In this document: positions 7,331-47,951 of the stretch, in pieces
Numbering within the stretch: the stretch's first letter is position 1
Layout of the letters: every line of letters starts with the position of its first letter
Assembly: GCA_023515725.1 (NCBI GenBank)
Contig: JALDTO010000247.1
Location: 186,001 to 250,000 of the forward strand
DNA: 64,000 nt
Direction: 5' to 3'
From: Amoeboaphelidium protococcarum X5
Taxonomy: Eukaryota; Fungi; Aphelidiomycota
Made by a program: the position numbers and the translations under genes
The notes under the pieces: model-generated
What the model was told of the DNA's origin: nothing
Databases searched by the model: none
What the model saw: the letters and a program-made list of their open reading frames with translations, nothing else

Positions 7331-7483
7331 ACTAGCATGACTTTTTCAAGATCCGAACAACTTCGTATCTGTGACTTTTAGCACATCACCATGCACATCT
7401 AAATGATTTAAAACGATCAGATTTACAATAGAACGTAAAAAAAACGATTTCCACAATCGATAAAAAGCGATTCGGTACAACTA

Positions 7484-10400
7484 CTCTCACCGCGCTGACA
7501 TGGGATCTGTTGCTTTCAACAGGTTCTCAGTCAAAAACGGTAATTTCAACAGATCACCCTGAGATTCTTGGAAAGGAGCGGTAATACAGTTCCAGTTTGA
7601 TAATATGTTTACGCACTCTATTCGCTTACTGCTGAATTTTATTGCAGCTCAATACAATCACTCTTACCGCGCTGACATGAGATCTGTTGTTTTCAACAGG
7701 TTTTGAGCTAAAAACGGTATTTTTCAACAGATCACCCTGAGATTCTTGGAAAGGAGCGGTAAATCAATTTCAGGTGGAAATTATCTTGAGGGACTCTATT
7801 CGCTTACTGCTGAACTTTATTGCAGCTCAATACAGTTACTCTTACCGCGATGACATGAGATCTGTTGTTTTCAACAGGTTCTCAGTCAAAACCGGTATTT
7901 TTCAACAGATCACCCTGAGATTCTTGGAAAGGAGCGGTAATATAGTTCCAGTTGGATAATATGTTTACGCACTCTATTCGCTTACTGCTGAACTTTATTG
8001 CAGCTCAGTAGAGTCACTCTTACCGCGCTGACATGAGATCTGTTGTTTTCAACAGGTTCTCAGTCAAAACCGGTATTTTTCAACAGATCACCCTGAGATT
8101 CTTGGAAAGGAGCGGTAATACAGTTCCAGTTGGATAATATGTTTACGCACTCTATTCGCTTACTGCTGAACTTTATTGCAGCTCAATTCAGTCACTCTTA
8201 CCGTGCTGACAAGGGATCTGTTGTATTCAACAGGTTTTGAGCAAAAAACGGTATTTTTCAACAGATCACCCTGAGATTCTTGGAAAGGAGCGGCATATCA
8301 ATTTCAGGTGGAAATTATCTTGAGGGGCTCTATTCTCCTACTGTGGAATTTTATTGCAGCTCAATACAGTCACTCTTACCGTGCTGACATGGGATCTGTT
8401 GTTTTCAACAGGTTTTGAGCAAAAAACGGTATTTTTCAACAGATCACCCTGAGATTCTTGGAAAGGAGCGTTATATCAATTTTAGGTGGAAATTATCTTG
8501 AGGGACTCTATTCGCTTACTGCTGAACCTTATTGCAGCTCAGTACAATCAATCTTACCGCGCTGACATGAGATCTGTTGTTTTCAACAGGTTCTCAATCA
8601 AAACCGGTATTTTTCAACAGATCACCCTGAGATTCTTGGAAAAGAGCGGTATATCAATTTCAGGTGGAAATTATCTTGAGGGGCTCTATTCTCCTACTGT
8701 GGAATTTTATTGCAGCTCAATACAGTCACTCTTACCGTGCTGACATGGGATCTGTTGTTTTCAACAGGTTTTGAGCTAAAACCGGTATTTTTCAACAGAT
8801 CACCCTGAGATTCTTGGAAAGGAGCGGTAATATAGTTCCAGTTGGATAATATGTTTACGCACTCTATTCGCTTACTGGTGAACTTTATTGCAGCTCAGTA
8901 GAGTCACTCTTACCGCGCTGACATGAGATCTGTTGTTTTCAACAGGTTCTCAGTCAAAAACGGTAATTTCAACAGATCACCCTGAGATTCTTGGAAAGGA
9001 GCGGTAATACAGTTCCAGTTGGATAATATGTTTACGCACTCTATTCGCTTACTGCTGAACTTTATTGCAGCTCAATTCAGTCACTCTTACCGTGCTGACA
9101 AGGGATCTGTTGTTTTCAACAGGTTCTCAGTCAAAACCGGTATTTTTCAACAGATCACCCTGAGATTCTTGGAAAGGAGCGGTAATACAGTTCCAGTTGG
9201 ATAATATGTTTACGCACTCTATTCGCTTACTGCTGAACTTTATTGCAGCTCAGTAGAGTCACTCTTACCGCGCTGACATGAGATCTGTTGTTTTCAACAG
9301 GTTTTGAGCAAAAAACGGTAATTTCAACAGATCACCCTGAGATCTTTGAAGTAGAGCGGTAAATCAATTTCAGGTGGAAATTATCTTGAGGGACTCTATT
9401 CGCTTACTGCTGAACTTTATTGCAGCTCAATACAGTCACTCTTACCGCGCTGACATGAGATCTGTTGTTTTCAACAGGTTCTCAGTCAAAACCGGCATTT
9501 TTCAACAGATCACCCTGAGATTCTTGGAAAGGAGCGGTAATACAGTTCCAGTTGGATAATATGTTTACGATTTCTATTCGCTTACTGCTGAACCTTATTG
9601 CAGCTCAGTACAATCAATCTTACCGCGCTGACATGAGATCTGTTGTTTTCAACAGGTTTTGAGCAAAAAACGGTAATTTCAACAGATCACCCTGAGATCT
9701 TTGAAGTAGAGCTATAATTCAGTTCCAGTTGGATAATATGTTTACGCACTCTATTCGCTTACTGCTGAACTTTATTGCAGCTCAATACAACCACAATCAC
9801 CGTGCTGACAAGGGATCTGTTGTTTTCAACAGGTTCTCAGTCAAAACCGGTATTTTTCAACAGATCACCCTGAGATTCTTGGAAAGGAGCGGTATATCAA
9901 TTTCAGGTGAAAATTATCTTGAGGGGCTCTATTCGCTTACTGCTGAACTTTATTGCAGCTCAGTACAACCACAATCACCGCGCTGACATGGGATCTGTTG
10001 TTTTCAACAGGTTCTCAATCAAGACCGGTATTTTTCAACAGATCACCCTGAGATCTTTGAAGTAGAGCTATAATTCAGTTCCAGTTGGATAATATGTTTA
10101 CGCACTCTATTCGCTTACTGGTGAACTTTAATGCAGCTCAATACAACCACAATCACCGTGCTGACATGAGATCTGTTGTTTTCAACAGGTTCTCAATCAA
10201 AACCGGTATTTTTCAACAGATCACCCTGAGATTCTTGGAAAGGAGCGATATATCAATTTCAGGTGGAAATTATCTTGAGGGGCTCTATTTTCCTACTGTG
10301 GAATTTTATTGCAGCTCAATACAGTCACTCTTACCGTGCTGACATGGGATCTGTTGTTTTCAACAGGTTTTGAGCAAAAAACGGTAATTTCAACAGATCA

Positions 10401-11090
10401 CCCTGAGATCTTTGAAGTAGAGCTATAATTCAGTTCCAGTTGGATAATATGTTTACGCACTCTATTCGCTTACTGGTGAACTTTAATGCAGCTCAATACA
10501 ACCACAATCACCGTGCTGACATGAGATCTGTTGTTTTCAACAGGTTCTCAATCAAAACCGGTATTTTTCAACAGATCACCCTGAGATTCTTGGAAAGGAG
10601 CGGTATATCAATTTCAGGTGGAAATTATCTTGAGGGGCTCTATTCTCCTACTGTGGAATTTTATTGCAGCTCAATACAGTCAATCTTACCGCGCTGACAT
10701 GAGATCTGTTGTTTTCAACAGGTTCTCAGTCAAAACCGGTATTTTTCAACAGATCACCCTGAGATTCTTGGAAAGGAGCGGTAATACAGTTCCAGTTGGA
10801 TAATATGTTTACGCACTCTATTCGCTTACTGCTGAACTTTATTGCAGCTCAGTAGAGTCACTCTTACCGCGCTGACATGAGATCTGTTGTTTTCAACAGG
10901 TTCTCAGTCAAAACCGGCATTTTTCAACAGATCACCCTGAGATTCTTGGAAAGGAGCGGTAATGCAGTTCCAGGTGGTAAATATGCCTTAACACTCTATT
11001 CGCTTACTGCTGAACTTTATTGCAGTTCAGAAGAGTAACTCTCGGCGCGTTGGTATGGGATCTGTGGTTTTCGACAGGATCTCCAACGTA
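7484..11090. repeat. Tandem satellite, ~20 copies of a 177-178 bp monomer
   Basis: AGATCACCCTGAG recurs at 7551, 7729, 7907, 8085 and onward (178-bp period); terminal copies are degenerate; period is not a multiple of 3. Confidence 0.97.
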
Positions 11091-14315: not shown

Positions 14316-14909
14316 ATGATTAAATTAACAAGCTTATTTAGACAAAATCTGCAGATATCAAGCACTATTTTTAAAAGTAATAGTAAAAGATGCTTAAGTA
14401 CAACTAGTGCTTTGTACGCGTCGAAAAGGCCATAAAAGTTTAGTCTCCACACGCACAAGTATTAGACGGAGACCTTCATGCCAACGCTGATGAATGTGAA
14501 GACTTCAGTGTATGAGAATAGTAGCGCTGGTAGAAAATCTCTGCTCCATTTTATGGATAAATCTGATATTAATCTGGTGTCGCGAAAGTAATGGAAACTG
14601 TATTAGAAACACGTATTGCAACCGCATCAGAAGAAGACTCAGGTTCATAATCAATCAGTGTTCTACCAGATGGAGGCGATGCAGAGATACATTCCTACAT
14701 CTAGCCACTTGGCAGGCAGGTAGAATTTTAAGCGAATGAGCTCCAATTCGACGCACAAAGTTGGTAAGAAGTCGCGCGTCAGACGTCAGCGCATCAAACG
14801 CGTCCGATATGCTACGCGTTCCCAAGTGAAGAAGTTGCGCAGGGTGTTCAACAATGGCTTTGGCAAACATCGTGGCTCTAATAGACTATTTGGTATCAAT
14901 GAACAATGA
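14316..14909 (+). CDS. Basic mitochondrial protein, probably ribosomal bL35m
   Basis: Mitochondrial presequence (MIKLTSLFRQ...KRCLSTTS); C-terminal FKR..STHKVGKKSRVRRQRIKRVRYATRSQVKKLRR resembles bL35. Confidence 0.55.
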
Positions 14910-15026
14910 AATTATTACATCATATGATAATTTGTTTACTGTCATTTAAATATTTTTTAGCATGTGATCTCTTAATAAAATTGAGTTTAAAGATTTAAGA
15001 ATTCAGCTAATGCCATTTGATGTAAG

Positions 15027-15630
15027 GCTCAGGACTTGAGACAAGGTGTTCTTGCCCATAATTGCGTCCACATTCAAGTTTGTAGCTCTACCAAGAATTG
15101 AAATCTCTGATGCAAATATGGATGTCACTTTCGACAATATTGTCATTTCATTGGAAAGCGCCTTGCCTAATTTGGTTGAAGTCAACTTTACGAATAACAT
15201 TCAAATGTCTCCCCGCCCCAATCTGCCTAGTGCCTTTTACATCAGCGCCGTGGATGTCAATGTGTACCAGATCCAGGCTGATTTGCGCAATGTGGAGTTT
15301 TCAATCAACAAGCGAGGATTTCCGCCTCTGCGCGACGCTGGACTTGCTGACATTTTCTTAAGTGGAAATGGACTGAGTATCACAACGAAGACTGGCATTG
15401 ACACCAATCTGTGGTACACCACCTTGGTTCCTGTGGACATTAAGGTGAACATTGACGCGTTGCGCATAAATCTGCACGACTCGAGCCACGACTTTGCTTT
15501 CAGATTATTGGGCACATCTCTGGTCAATCAGTTGAAAAAGAGAATCTGTCGTTCACTGGAAGAGCAAATCTTCCTTGCCATCTGCCGTCTTGACTCTCTC
15601 GTAACTCAGACTTTCAAGTCTCAGCAGTGA
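15027..15630 (+). pseudogene. Orphan C-terminal third of a fungal DUF4449/DUF5923-type protein
   Basis: VFLPII..FKFVALPRIEISD..MDVTFDN....LPN, QIQADLRNVEF...GFPPLRDAGLADIFLSGNGL; no 5' part; in-frame TGA at 15037-15039. Confidence 0.7.
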
Positions 15631-16264
15631 TGGTATATTGTGTATTGCTATTATTTTTAATTGATTGCATTTTAGAATGAATTTTATGTACAAATATATT
15701 GTTTGCATAGCACTGATTATTTATAATGTTTCATCACTTCATACACTTGTTAGCTCTGTGGATCAATCATCGAAGGGAGTCGAAACATTGACACATACAG
15801 TACGTTTAGACACTCTCCAAATCGCGTAGATGTCTATATGTACGGTATATAAACGACGTCTTTATATTCTTCCAATTATAAGTTCATATCTTCAAAGTGC
15901 GAGTCGTTAAAGAGATCTTGCATTCACCTCAACTGAAAAGTACTTCTGATCAGTTTAGTTCCCTGGATAGTGCTTAAGCGCGACATCAGTTTCCTGTAAG
16001 ATTGCGATGAACTGACTCCCCAACAACTTGAGTCCTTTATCTAAGATATTATTAAAGGCAATTAAGAGCCGCAAACGCGAGTCGATTATTAATAAATTTT
16101 AATCCGTTACTCCTAATACTTTTAGTCCTCCGGTGTGAATATGGTTTTCACCCTTTGCGCCAGTTGTGCAATCATACTTACCGACATTATCAATTCAACC
16201 TCTTTCACCAAAATTGATAAAAAATCTATTTCAAATCAATTGCATAATCTTATAGAGGGAAAAA

Positions 16265-16429
16265 ATGATATCAGATTTGATCGCTAAAACCAAAGGATCA
16301 TCCTCCTACCCTTCCATGATTAATCTCAATTCTACGTGGGTTAATAGTAAAGGCGCGTGGTCTATAAACGCGCTGGTCATCCTGATACTCCGAATTGCAT
16401 TTGGCATCATTCCATCATCTGCGAAGTGA
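16265..16429 (+). pseudogene. Truncated ORM1/ORMDL gene (N-terminal ~54 aa only)
   Basis: NLNSTWVNSKGAWSINALVILILRIAFGIIP matches the ORM N-terminal motif, then an early TGA; the downstream WTLTN/FH..KG.PF part was not found. Confidence 0.65.
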
Positions 16430-16629
16430 GGGGAGATATGAAACACTTCACCTGCTAGAAAGATACGTGCTGAGTCGCTGCGTTGTTAGAAGGAGTCGAG
16501 TTGGCCAAATGGTTTAGAATATCTTTGCAAATTAAGAGACTGCTCTTTATGAGCGGGAACTTATGTAACTGACGACTATATACGATCCTTCGCTATCATT
16601 TAAATATAGCAGAAAATAATAGCGCGACT

Positions 16630-16890
16630 CTCTGGGAAAATACTCATACCACACAAGGTGTGATGTACTTTAGCAAAACGCATCACAAGGTGTGAGACAT
16701 TGCCAAACCGCGATAAAATAAGATTTGGCTGCTTTTAATCACACTTTTCTAGTATATTCGAGTCTCCTCTTTCATTTAAAAGTAACCGCAAATGTAGAAC
16801 ACTGCTCGCCGAAAAGTTACCCATACCACACAAGGTGTGATACACTTTAGCGAAACACATCACAAGGTGTGATGCATTGTCAAACCGCGT
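16630..16890. repeat. Two-copy diverged direct repeat containing CACAAGGTGTGA dyads
   Basis: CATACCACACAAGGTGTGAT...TTTAGC.AAAC.CATCACAAGGTGTGA..CATTG.CAAACCGCG at 16645 and 16822 (177 bp apart). Confidence 0.85.
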
Positions 16891-17266
16891 TTGCATTGTT
16901 ACAAAAAAGTTATTCTTGCTCCGGCTTTGCGCTGGCTATCATAATTATAGTCATCAGCGGCCAGCGAGTCTTATTTTGAGGTGCCAGAATGATAATTGAC
17001 TATTTGGTCGATGAATAACACTGTTACTGGGGGCTCGTTCGATGACGTCATTTATCCAGTCACTCACACGTCTCAACATGGGCTTGTTTATTTGCTTTAA
17101 CAATGTAGCATGTGTGAGAAAAAAAAGGATGGCACACTTTACTTATGATTATCAGGGATGGTTTATCAACAGTATCTTTCTAGATGAAAGATTTAATTAA
17201 ATATGAACCTCTTGTAACACATTATCAATTTAAAATTACATATAGTTTATTTTGTAACAAGAAGAA

Positions 17267-18022
17267 TCATAATATCTTGATAACGATCGACTTGAAATCG
17301 TCACAGGTGGAGAGAGAGGTAAAGTCGTGAACTAGAGAACCATCATCCATCATTTATGCCAACTGCGGATTAATCGAAATCTTGCCTAGCAGCGGAATAT
17401 TATACTTTTAAGATAGCGATTATCCACCACCAGAGCTGAATATATCCGTACAATCTGAGCAATGTGGGCACTTGTATCCACTCATATTCTCAATGACTCC
17501 GAGCACAGGGATTCCGACAGTTTTGCAAAAATTGAATTCTTTACGAACATCTGCCACTGCTACTTACTACGGAGTAGTGACCAAGATTGCGCCATCTAAT
17601 GCATATTAATCCTGATTACTCCTTATTGCATCCAGTACAGCTAAATGCTCATCGGATGTTCCAGGTGGCGTGTCTATGAGCAGGTAATCGAGATGACCCC
17701 AATCTACATTGCGGATAAACTGAGAGATCATTGCAGTCTTTTTAGGACCACGCCACACTACAGCAGTGTCTTTGTCTTGGAGTAGGAAATTGATAGACAT
17801 AAGATATAGGCCATCTGCCACCTGAGCAGGCACCCAGCCATTCGATGATTATTCTATTGATGCTTCAGGTACGCCAAATACCAGTGGCATTGATGGACCG
17901 CAAAGATCCACATCAAGTACTCCCACTCTTAGACCGCGGCTGTGTAATGCTAACGCCAATTATCCACATACTGAAGATTTACCAACACCGCCCTTTCCAC
18001 TTAATACTAGCAGCGTCTTCAT
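17267..18022 (-). CDS. NUBP2: Cytosolic Fe-S assembly factor Cfd1/NUBP2
   Basis: [51 protein letters not shown]; lacks the N-terminal Cys cluster of Nbp35. Confidence 0.9.
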
Positions 18023-18463
18023 ATTGTAATTCGGATTTTATTATATCTATCCGCTGATGATAATAGAAAAACGAAGCAAAATGTCTCTGATTATTGAAAT
18101 AAATCTTAAGAGGCGCGTCTTCTCTCACTTTGTTAGGCAGAGTTACTTTAGTGTGTCAAATATTGTATGTAGAGTTGCTTTAGTGTATTGGACTGAACAA
18201 TTTTACAAATAAGCAGTAAATATTTATTTAACATGGAAATTATCTAATAGTATCTACTAATCTTTATTTGAAACACATGGATAGTTATGGACTCACTTGA
18301 TGACTGATGTGGCGGTCATCCCTGAGTTAGAAGTGTTCATGCAAAGTTGGTGGTGTTATATCATGATATCATAAAATGGATACTGGCTTTACCTATTTTC
18401 AGTCTGAATTATCTGTAATCCTATTCAATTGGTCCTATTAAAATACATTATCAGCAAGAAGGT

Positions 18464-20290
18464 ATGGATAATCAGTGGAAAGCGCAAGAAACTGCTCCAA
18501 GGACAGAAGAAAACGTGTAAGAGCAACTGCTTAGGGCGCGCAACATTACTGAACACCCCCAGCCAGGATATCAAGGATATGGGGTGATGCCCCAAAAAGG
18601 CGCCGGTAAAGGTCCCAAAATTGCCCTCATGCCTCGCCGCAAAGAGGAGCAATCACAGACAGCGTAGGTTCAGTTGAATAGGGAAGTGAAGACGCATACG
18701 GCAGCGTTCAATCCGGGTCCTATGCAGAGACCGTATCCATTTATGATGCCCTATTACGCAAGCAAACTTGGCATGGCACCGCAAGCTTATCCTAGTAACT
18801 TTGTGTAAACTTATGGAATTGGTCCGTACAGCGATCACTACTACTATGGATTCACACCCAAGGATGTGTTGCTCTCGATTGCCAATTCTCCCCGCGGAAG
18901 ACGTCATTCGCCGTATACCAATCCTGCATATGGCAAACTATCTTTAATGAGATAACGCGAGATTTAGGACTCCAGAAGATTCATGATGCAAGTATAGGAA
19001 ATCTTTATGCAGGGACGTATTCCAACCAACCAGTTTTTGCACGAGCTTATCGGAAGGCTAAACTTTTGTATCAATCGCTCCATGTATGGTGGGAATTTGT
19101 CACCAGCATCAGCGGAAGTATTGATCAATGTGCAGTAATTCATCCAGGTATTGGGACAGGTGCTGCAGGAGAAGAATTATGATGAAAAGTTGCAGAGTTT
19201 CTTGCAGCACGCGTATCTATCTTCAATGTTTACGGCTCAGGTGAAGTAACGCATATCTCAGTATGGAATGCCTGATTAGTAGTTTGGTAGAGGTGGCCAG
19301 TAGCAGCATGTCATGAAAATTCTAATGTAGTTGGGAAAGTTGTTGAAATCCGGCACTGAAGTTAGCGGTCTGCTGGAGATGATTGGCAATTCATAGTAAT
19401 CCCAATCTCCGATGCCTGAGCCTTAGCAATAACGTCCAATGTAATCTTAGGCTGCGTCAATGAGAAATGGTGGCGGTGGAACGACGGTGGGCGGAGAGCA
19501 GATGTATGTGCGAGTCGATCAGAATGCTCCAAGTCCCCAGCAGTTCTAAGCACCTTCTGCGTAACCAATGATGAGAGATTATGCATCAGCTTTACGCACA
19601 CCATTAACAGCTGATCAAGCGGCCCTAGTTGCCGAGTCTCTACGCAGTATCCTGTAATCGCTGCAGTAAAGTCCAGAGTTGCTGCAAGCTGTGATTCTGA
19701 TTGCTCGTATGGCTGCGGAACTTGGTGCAGTGACTGGTAGGGAGTATCACAGGATGCATCGTACTATTCCTCTGTCGTACTATGAAGCGAATAGGCCTGC
19801 TATGCTTGAAGATCTTAAGCAGTTGGTGTAAAGATTTGCAAATGGATATTCCTTGGATGGTCTGATACGCGTCATTGATTAGTTTTAATTGTTCATTACA
19901 CAGGATTGGGAGACTAGGGACTATTTGGACTCTCTGCAGTATTTTTCTAGTCGTTGTATGGATGATCCCGGCTACTTGAATGGTCCAGAATACACTCTGA
20001 AGTCTATCCGCCTGATTGAGGATGGTAGAAAGCTGTTTGGTACCAAGATTCCTCAGTTGATCAACAGCTTTGTGTTTGAATTGTAAAATATTCTGAATGG
20101 CCTGCAGTCCGATCGTGCATTGAATGCAATCTACTAATCTGGATGGTAGTTGGTTCAGTCTATCCTGATGGATCCTCAATCAGGCTAGGTGACTTTGAAG
20201 TAGGATCTGATCTTTGAGAACTATATCCATTCACAGTTGTTTTATTGCCTATATTACAAGGATGTTGCAGATGTGGGTGTAAAGTCTTGA
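18464..20290 (+). CDS. N-terminal two-thirds of a DUF4449/DUF5923-type protein, truncated and ending in an unrelated tail
   Basis: Open frame of ~608 aa: GRIPTNQ, LSPASAEVL...QEKNYDEKLQSF, LVQRFANGYSLD, DPGYL, DPQSGQVTLKQDL; similarity stops near 20212. Confidence 0.75.
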
Positions 20291-20460
20291 AAACAAATAC
20301 AGTAGGACGTTATATAACATCAATTTTTAATAATTGTCAAGTCGCCATTATCTACCTCTCATTACTGCGGTATCAATTCATCGCTGTACTGTCGTTCTCG
20401 CGTCGCCACCGTTTCACTTTCACCAATACTACTGATCTTCATAGCTATTTAGGAGTTTTC

Positions 20461-20560
20461 TCTCTCTATCTCTCTCTCTCTCTCTTTCTGTTTTCTATCT
20501 CCCTTCTGCTTTCTTTAGACCGATCTTTGTCTGTGTGTGTGTGTCTGTGTGTGTGTGTGT
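20461..20560. repeat. (CT)n and (GT)n microsatellites
   Basis: Directly visible. Confidence 0.9.
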
Positions 20561-20667
20561 GCTTTTCTTTTAACGAATTATCATCTGAACAGTCAAAATA
20601 CTGCTAGTTATTATACCCTCTTGATTTCTACTTATTATTAATTACTAAATTAGACTGTAAATTGAAA

Positions 20668-21959
20668 ATGGATGTAGAGAAATAGAACAAGATCTAAGCG
20701 CTGGTTGAAGTTAGTGGATTGGGTCCCACCGAGGCTGAACATTTGTTAGAGGCACATTAGTGGAATGTTGATGAAGCAGTAACGACTCATTATGACACTG
20801 GACTAAAGTAGCCACAGATTGCATCGACTGTCCAAAGGGGTAGCAGCGGTCAGTCTTAAGCTTCCGTGCCAGACAGGTAAATCTTATATACTAAAATATT
20901 GTCTTTAAATTTATTGTTATATTATGTTACTCTATTTGTAGTACAGGTAGAAGGGGAATTGCAACTTTTAGTGATCTAAAGCAATCTGGTGCTGGCCAGG
21001 GATAGGGTGATAAAGATGACAAGGAAAAGTAGACTTACTTTACCGGTGGTGAGAAGAGTGGAATGCTGGTGGAAGGTCCACCTTAAGATATGGGATCCGG
21101 ATCAAATGATGTTGTTCAGCAACTCTTGAAAAAGGCTCAGTAGATGGCTGGCTTTGGACCTTCTGAGGGTGATGATGATGACAATGATGATGGTTCATAT
21201 TAGTCTAGAATGCCCCAGCAGTCCGCTTCATCCAGGCCAGTGTTTAAAGGCACGGGATACAAGTTGGGTGGGGAAGATGTGCAGAGTGAAGTCATTCCAG
21301 ATCCTAGTTATCCTCAAGTGCCTGGTCAATCCGCTCTGAATTAGCATCAGCAGTAACAAGGGCACGAATTGCCAGAGGTGGAGAGACGTATCACCTTCTG
21401 GAAAGATGGATTTACTATTGGTGAAGATGGAGAGTTGCTAAAGTATGATGATCCAAAGAATAAACAAATACTTGAGTTGATTTTGAGTGGACGTGCGCCT
21501 CTGCATCTGTTCAATGTCCAGCCTGGTCAGAGAGCTGTGGTGAAAGTTGAAGAGAGGCGTGACTAGATGTATGTTCCGCCTAAGCGTAGTGTGAAGGCTT
21601 TCTCTGGTACTGGAAATAGATTGGGAAGTGTAGTGCCTCAGGACTCTTCATCACCATCATCATCGTAGTAGAAACCTCCGGCGCAACAATAATCATCATC
21701 GTTCACACTAAAGATTGATGACTCTAAGCCTGTAACTTCAATTCAAATCCGTTTAGCTGACGGTACTAGAATGGTGGCACGCTTTAATTTGACGCATACT
21801 GTGGCTGATGTTAGAAATTTCATCAACAACTCCAGGCCTGGTCAAGGAGGGAAAAGTTACACTCTGTAGACTCAGTTCCCCACCAAAGTGTTGGACGATA
21901 TGTAATCTCTCGGTGATGCTGGATTAAATAATGCAGTAATATTCCAAAAGATGTAGTGA
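20668..21959 (+). CDS. NSFL1C: p47/Shp1 UBA-SEP-UBX cofactor of p97
   Basis: [59 protein letters not shown]; intron 20877-20941. Confidence 0.9.
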
Positions 21960-36208: not shown

Positions 36209-37517
<1,309 letters not shown>

Positions 37518-46628: not shown

Positions 46629-47951
46629 ATGGAATCTTAGAGAATTAATTTGGTTCATAGCCATTTGGAAGCTGCGGCTGGAAAGTTTGCCAAGAAGAGT
46701 CCGGATGATGTAGTTATTGTAGCGTAAATATTTCATACTGCTTCGGTTTTTTATAGATGACCACCTATGAATGTTACACACGTTCACTTTACATCTATGT
46801 GTAGTGCTGTGAGAACTCCTTTGACTCGTGCTCGCAAGGGTGGCTTTAAAGATACACTGCAGGAGGAGATTTTGGCATTTGCTCTGAAAGGTATCCTGGA
46901 CAAGACTGGTATTGACCCTGCTCTGGTGGAAGATATCCAAGTTGGTAATGTTCTGCCTCCTGGTGGTGGCGCGACATTGGCCAGAATGTCCATGCTGTAT
47001 GCTGGCTACCCAGACACTTCAAGTGTGAGTACTGTGAATCGCCAATGTTCTAGTGGATTGTAGGCTTGTGCTAGCATCGTGGCTGCTATTCAGACTGGTG
47101 TTATTGAAGTCGGTATCGGTGCCGGTGTGGAGTCAATGACTAGCAACTATGGTCCTAATGCTGTACCATCTCAGATGAGTGATAAAGTGCTGAGCAATAA
47201 GCAGGCTGCAGATTCTTTGATTCCTATGGGATAGACGTCGGAGAATGTTGCCTCCTAGTTTGGAGTGTCGCGTGAAGTGCAGGATAAGTTCGCCGTGGCC
47301 AGCCATGAGAAGGCTAGCATTGCAACGAAGAATGGCTGGTTCAAGGAGGAGATTGTGCCGTGCCAAGTCACTGTCACTGGTAAAGATGGTGCTGAGAAGA
47401 CTGTCACTTTGACGCAAGACGATGGTATTCGCGCAGGAACTACTTTTGAGACGCTGAGCAAGCTGAGACCTGCATTTAAGGAAAATGGTACCACCACCGC
47501 TGGTAATGCTAGTCAAGTTACGGATGGTGCAGCTGCTGTATTGCTGATGAAGCGCTCCAAGGCTTAGCAATTGGGTCTGCCTATTGTTGGTAAGTGGATC
47601 AGTTTTGCCGTTGCTGGTGTACCTCCTCATATTATGGGCATTGGACCAGCTTTTGCTATTCCAAAGGCTCTGAAGAAGGCTGGCCTGGGCGTGAATGACA
47701 TTGATATTTACGAAATCAATGAGGCTTTTGCATCCCAGTGCGTCTACAGCATCAAGACTTTGAACATCCCATTTGAGAAGGTGAATCCAAAGGGTGGTGC
47801 TATTGCTTTGGGTCATCCTCTGGGTGCTACTGGTGCAAGATAGATTGCCACTATATTGCCTGAATTGAAGCGTACTGGAAAGAAGTTGGGTGTCGTGAGT
47901 ATGTGTATCGGAACTGGAATGGGTGCAGCTGCTGTTATTCAAGCCGAATGA
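46629..47951 (+). CDS. ACAA1: Peroxisomal 3-ketoacyl-CoA thiolase with PTS2
   Basis: N-terminal RINLVHSHL fits the PTS2 consensus; thiolase motifs; intron 46724-46804. Confidence 0.92.

Follow-up and report, generated by a model that had tools for sequence, protein, structure and literature searches.

A gene in two halves between two host genes

The stretch of DNA analysed here, referred to as the window, comprises 64,000 nucleotides of an assembly of Amoeboaphelidium protococcarum, a relative of fungi that parasitises algae (contig C245, positions 186001-250000). Most regions of this assembly are present in two copies, with the sister copy ~90% identical, and genome-wide duplications have been reported for the species (PMC10608142). 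A. protococcarum has also been reported to use a genetic code in which TAA and TAG specify glutamine (PMC11687900), and this assignment (code 6) is the only reading that yields long open frames in the window.

A block of ~5.2 kb at positions 15029-20211 lies between two genes on the forward strand. The host gene on its left is represented by its 3′ part (14736-14909) and is termed bL35m-like, a name without Pfam support, as a Pfam search of this interval returned no match; as far as the junction it is collinear with C205, the sister contig. The host gene on the right (20669-21959) encodes a p47-type protein with a Pfam SEP domain and is likewise collinear with C205. At the left junction (15028/15029) host AAGGC meets block TCAGG without microhomology, and at the right junction (20211/20212) block CTGAT meets host CTTTG. 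The original prediction had recognised a permuted block of this size and had set its limits slightly wider, at 15027-20212.

The two ends of the block carry the two halves of a single gene (geneX) in swapped order, as had been proposed. The 5′ half (18464-20211, forward strand) encodes residues 1-582/583 and is 98.6-99.3% identical to a copy on contig C98, and the 3′ half (15029-15630, forward strand) encodes the last ~200 codons and is 99.2% identical to the same copy. In searches made with each protein piece individually, never with a joined spliced model, the Pfam profile HAM1_N aligned over positions 27-148 and 366-502 to the downstream half and over 506-622 to the upstream half. Both matches are above the cut-off and together give contiguous coverage without overlap; the upstream half additionally matches HAM1_C (27.9 bits, cut-off 27). 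The two halves thus belong to one HAM1-like protein, of a family formerly named DUF4449. A reading of the halves as separate paralogs was rejected, since both are 99% identical to a single donor; a true paralog family is found on C155 and C264.

Intact geneX encodes 782 amino acids on C98 (97% DNA identity to the window block), and its sister gene on C142 encodes 795. The halves had originally been joined from 20212 to 15031 at a shared TC, leaving a single TGA as the only lesion. Neither detail survives comparison with the donor, which reads GATTCAGG and places the join at 20211/15029 (GAT/TCAGG). The lesion is instead one additional A at 15043-44, a +1 frameshift five codons past the join, and the true reading continues ...KQDLIQDLRQVFLP. 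If rejoined, the window copy would be frameshifted and would stop at codon 607 of 783; as it stands, the frame of the 5′ half continues for 26 codons into the host flank, to a TGA at 20288-20290. Along the branch leading to the window copy, 8 changes replace an amino acid and 6 are synonymous, whereas the intact branches have 22 replacement and 139 synonymous changes (P=0.0004), a pattern of relaxed selection. The split gene is most likely a dead copy without a new function. The suggestion that the block might recircularise and so restore geneX is countered by this pattern and by the two intact copies elsewhere, and recircularising would not yield a working gene because the window copy is frameshifted.

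Between the two halves the block codes for host genes only. The 3′ half is followed by donor intergenic DNA leading from geneX to ORMDL (15631-16264; 96% identical to C98 and 98% to C235), and then by the first 51 codons of ORMDL (16265-16417, forward strand; Pfam ORMDL 1-31), which is present as a full gene on C98 and C142. This gene had been correctly described as truncated, with the cut placed after ~54 amino acids rather than at 16417. At 16417/16418 it is joined, at a 2-bp CA microhomology, to a 472-bp piece of a multicopy element (16418-16889, forward strand) consisting of a lead-in and ~1.8 units of a 177-bp satellite, here called A. A circle junction had been expected near 16.4 kb, and 16417/16418 agrees with this, but there is a second junction at 16889/16890, so that the 472-bp satellite element is enclosed between the two. 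The second junction joins satellite A to an unrelated satellite, B, with the motif GCATTGT on both sides, and was found only in the window copy. Satellite B, which has a 178-bp unit, contributes 0.8 unit to the block (16890-17035, forward strand); it is the satellite that lies downstream of NUBP2 in the donor, where 3.9 units are present. The remaining gene, on the reverse strand (17267-18022), encodes a NUBP2/Cfd1-like P-loop NTPase (Pfam ParA/NUBPL) and is the third genomic copy. Its frame and motifs are kept, with omega ~0.23 and fewer replacement changes than expected under neutrality (P=0.001).

Donor, empty site and relatives of the block

The whole of 15029-20211 (5183 bp) is an exact circular permutation of a locus on C98, where the order NUBP2, geneX, ORMDL predicted for a donor is intact and the sequence is 97% identical. 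The two ends of the block are adjacent in this donor, and position 20211 is directly joined to 15029 in all four other copies, with 0 bp lost or gained. The donor's outer ends are linked by the new internal junctions 16417/16418 and 16889/16890. This combination of a permuted order, meeting ends and an intact donor is that of a circle-mediated duplication; a random linear piece would have ends that meet exactly with a chance of ~1/5183. As the donor on C98 is still intact, the event was a duplication and not the simple excision of NUBP2-geneX-ORMDL that had been envisaged. No terminal repeats were found at the block ends and no target-site duplication, as would mark a cut-and-paste or LTR element.

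The expected empty site, with the bL35m-like gene beside the p47 gene, was found on C205, where the two flanking host genes are adjacent. The window without the block aligns to C205 with no gap at the join and no visible target duplication. The intergenic stretch at this site is only moderately conserved, and a loss of a few target bases could therefore escape notice. Each of the two break sites is centred in a short palindrome (window 15025-15033; rejoined flank 15024-15028/20212-20214).

Short-read contigs support these joins in part. The left edge and the additional A are reproduced with 0 differences in contigs covering 14843-15073 and 14717-15073 (two runs of one sample). Over 20216-20600 depth is 0 among the contigs listed for all four runs (the listing is filtered, with some records left out, and contigs drop variants), and the right edge therefore rests on the assembly; the A-to-B junction is likewise absent from the listed contigs. 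The contigs listed for two further samples contain the geneX join only in its intact form, which is not proof that the split form is absent there. The ORMDL-to-A junction is present in contigs of two other samples as well as on C235 and C142, and therefore predates the insertion in the window.

Two further loci carry parts of the block. On C142, a single strand reads geneX 3′ part, ORMDL 5′ part, satellite A, remains of a 517-aa orphan gene, satellite B, NUBP2, whole geneX and whole ORMDL. Judging from this order, it is a relic tandem duplication in which the order of the window block is embedded. The additional geneX copy groups with C142's own gene, and both geneX halves of the window and the C235 copy group with C98, not with C142. 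The relic is part of a 6.8-kb insert adjoining NUBP2 (C142:552671-559476, L024), which has a 97-bp direct repeat at each end and also contains what by eye appears to be a remnant of a MULE-like transposase. In a second dispersed copy, on C235 (120564-128244, L025-L026), the 3′ part of geneX from 19605 is accompanied by the 5′ part of ORMDL, ten units of satellite A and a Copia-like retrotransposon that is truncated; C179, the sister of C235, is without this copy. The C235 copy has nine intergenic variants in common with the window but no full permutation, and its structure suggests the capture of a linear or trimmed piece.

Origin of the block

Taken together, the sequence comparisons argue for a single event of segmental duplication that passed through a DNA circle, without an element-encoded enzyme, a reading to which we give a probability of about 80%. 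In an old first step, the NUBP2-geneX-ORMDL locus would have gained a tandem duplicate whose junction carried a piece of satellite A, an order kept on C142. A unit of the C98 lineage, shortened by the A-to-B join, would then have become a circle of 5183 bp, for example by popping out between tandem copies and leaving a single intact donor. These two steps could have occurred in either order, as the circle may be older and C142 could represent a re-integration at the donor. The circle was then presumably opened by a single break within geneX, and a blunt join placed it into a second break, in the DNA that separates the bL35m-like gene from the p47 gene; end-joining repair is the most likely route. 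Only the product of this third step is seen directly, and the donor on C98, the empty site on C205 and the complementary ends (0 bp) favour the reopening and insertion as originally proposed. In the last step the split geneX decayed, as its frameshift and relaxed selection show, with the NUBP2 copy keeping its frame.

Among the alternatives, all of them unlikely, a Helitron-like rolling-circle capture fares best. An HUH enzyme would here nick two tandem copies at identical positions, thereby moving exactly one unit. The block resembles Helitrons in its TC start, the CTGA near its end and its gene fragments beside tandem repeats; Rep domains are present in the genome, a tandem precursor exists on C142, and in the three moved copies the donor breaks come after AT. 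The 3′ end reads CTGAT, one base beyond the CTGA that would fit the expected CTRR. However, the target lies between C and C and not between A and T, and neither end has a hairpin (z -0.11 and -0.32), including the subterminal 3′ hairpin of Helitrons. Furthermore, break positions differ among the other copies and arrays rather than being fixed, and the block has no DNA similarity to the single Helitron locus examined, on C179. At that locus (L037:2238-6707) a Helitron Rep domain lies in an open stretch of 1490 codons, which has no similarity to the satellites.

An error of assembly, whether at the right edge or within the block, is slightly less probable still. It would fit the lack of coverage over 20216-20600 among the listed contigs, several window-specific letters that are absent from read contigs, and the existence of near-identical copies in the genome. 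Against it, read contigs contain the left edge, which the check for misassembly thereby bore out, and the additional A; the block differs by 1-4% from C98 with a pattern of relaxed selection, and the flanks rejoin into the empty site of C205. Misassembly would concern only the right edge, which none of the listed contigs covers, and the A-to-B junction.

We regard enzyme-directed integration as equally improbable. A tyrosine recombinase or topoisomerase would act at dyad sites, with the satellite unit as a replicating episome. Both breaks are found no more than 1 bp from the midpoint of a short palindrome (CTGA-T-TCAG and AAGGCCTT; joint chance ~7e-4, computed post hoc), the joins are made with zero loss, and the A unit occurs in many copies that the assembly has collapsed. 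The circle and its target, however, have no common core of the kind seen with Crypton-like elements, the palindrome pattern is missing at other junctions, and the 517-aa protein of the A unit matches no recombinase or Rep family. Least probable is the capture at a break of a linear fragment of a tandem duplicate, or of a later-collapsed concatemer, with ends that match by chance: the block order is present linearly on C142 and C235 is apparently a captured linear or trimmed fragment, but an exact end match is expected only about once in 5000.

The preferred reading, circle-mediated segmental duplication, is a known mechanism, and the resemblance to circle-mediated translocations that had been noted is borne out by a yeast case and by vertebrate cases that work alike. 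Region B of wine yeasts is a circularly permuted block with genes broken at insertion and little or no homology at its breakpoints, for which end-joining was inferred (Galeote et al., 2011, PMC3053389). The window block is likewise permuted, has a gene broken in two and shows little or no breakpoint homology. Region B differs in that its circle was acquired horizontally, measures 17 kb, has a replication origin that has been tested and is known in eight forms, whereas the window circle would be of 5.2 kb and same-genome origin, carries satellite pieces and was found as one full permutation. In Drosophila, reintegration of eccDNA produces satellite arrays in which the partial units at the two ends add up to one complete monomer (Sproul et al., 2020, PMC7403614). 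Complementary ends and the joining of one satellite to another are found here too; that study sequenced eccDNA directly and did not focus on host genes, whereas the evidence here is genomic and the putative circle carries host genes. The circle translocations reported for cattle KIT (Durkin et al., 2012) and tilapia vasa (summarised in bioRxiv 10.1101/2022.06.22.497135) are blocks whose order is swapped and which show both the junction of a circle and the break made at integration; tilapia vasa, of 28 kb, is a duplication with the donor retained. The window block shares the swapped order and both kinds of join; the vertebrate cases are larger, and the present one is in an aphelid. A literature search, with most subscription papers outside its scope, found no circle-mediated case in aphelids.

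Few cases resolved to the base bear on how often circular DNA permanently marks eukaryotic genomes. Owing to the duplicated state of the genome, a single assembly here contains the donor, the relic tandem precursor, the empty site and the product. What the locus adds to the known mechanism is an apparent recurrence in this genome and a link to 177-bp satellites.

Satellite arrays and an inside-out transposon

Integration of a satellite circle predicts a whole number of units together with complementary ends, a signature taken from the Drosophila work (PMC7403614). Six A arrays have both ends visible, and five of these hold whole numbers of units at different phases (12.01, 10.03, 4.00, 2.99 and about 3), the exception being an array of 8.80 units. 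One B array, of 5.02 units, is also whole-number with complementary ends. Altogether six of the seven stand-alone arrays are whole-number (P about 1e-5; at a chance of 11/177 each, ~2e-5 even at five of seven), in a test that is post hoc with n=7 and in which short-read-style assembly may collapse unit counts, leaving end phases unaffected. At the 4.00-unit array, comparison with the sister contig shows that the site lost 1 bp, without duplication.

A related arrangement is found at C98:184630-192698 (L028), where a Tc1/mariner-like element is turned inside out, with its transposase halves in swapped order around a 6.4-kb A unit. The DDE_3 match is below the cut-off, and the halves were judged from the translation. 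The empty site of this insert is on C142, and its TA site is uninterrupted on C206 and C240. A 1376-aa 'ORF' on C206 proved to be a run of N and was discarded. The 6.4-kb unit (L028:2524-8914; also L029 and L046) consists of a 1.9-kb spacer, an A array and the 517-aa orphan gene, for whose protein family and relative searches returned relatives from the same species only and no family. It is multicopy and collapsed into small contigs, and the read depth of the A repeat is hundreds of times that of single-copy DNA.

These sequences suggest that circles with satellite DNA have been inserted into this genome repeatedly and along the same route. Several satellite arrays and the Tc1 element carry the same footprint, and the rate of such events is therefore measurable by comparing the two subgenomes. 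A broader proposal, that 177-bp satellites routinely form circles which capture neighbouring genes or transposons and re-integrate near-losslessly, as one of the main ways in which genes are duplicated and satellites spread here, and possibly with the satellite as origin or nick site, is speculative, and we consider it rather doubtful.

The window also contains a satellite of its own, with a 178-bp unit and 20.3 units (7483-11083). Satellites A, B and this one have no mutual similarity beyond short motifs; the three unrelated satellites have a common period of 177-178 bp. On C205 the sister array ends at the same point on the right but is only 2.5 units long, and the window array has therefore expanded or shrunk in place. 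Elsewhere in the window, the segments 36387-37498 and 46800-47938 are paralogous and 81% identical over 1.1 kb. Beside the 6.4-kb unit on C98, L028:1631-2094 is a 465-bp repeat with ~8 full genomic copies and longer relatives of ~1 kb.
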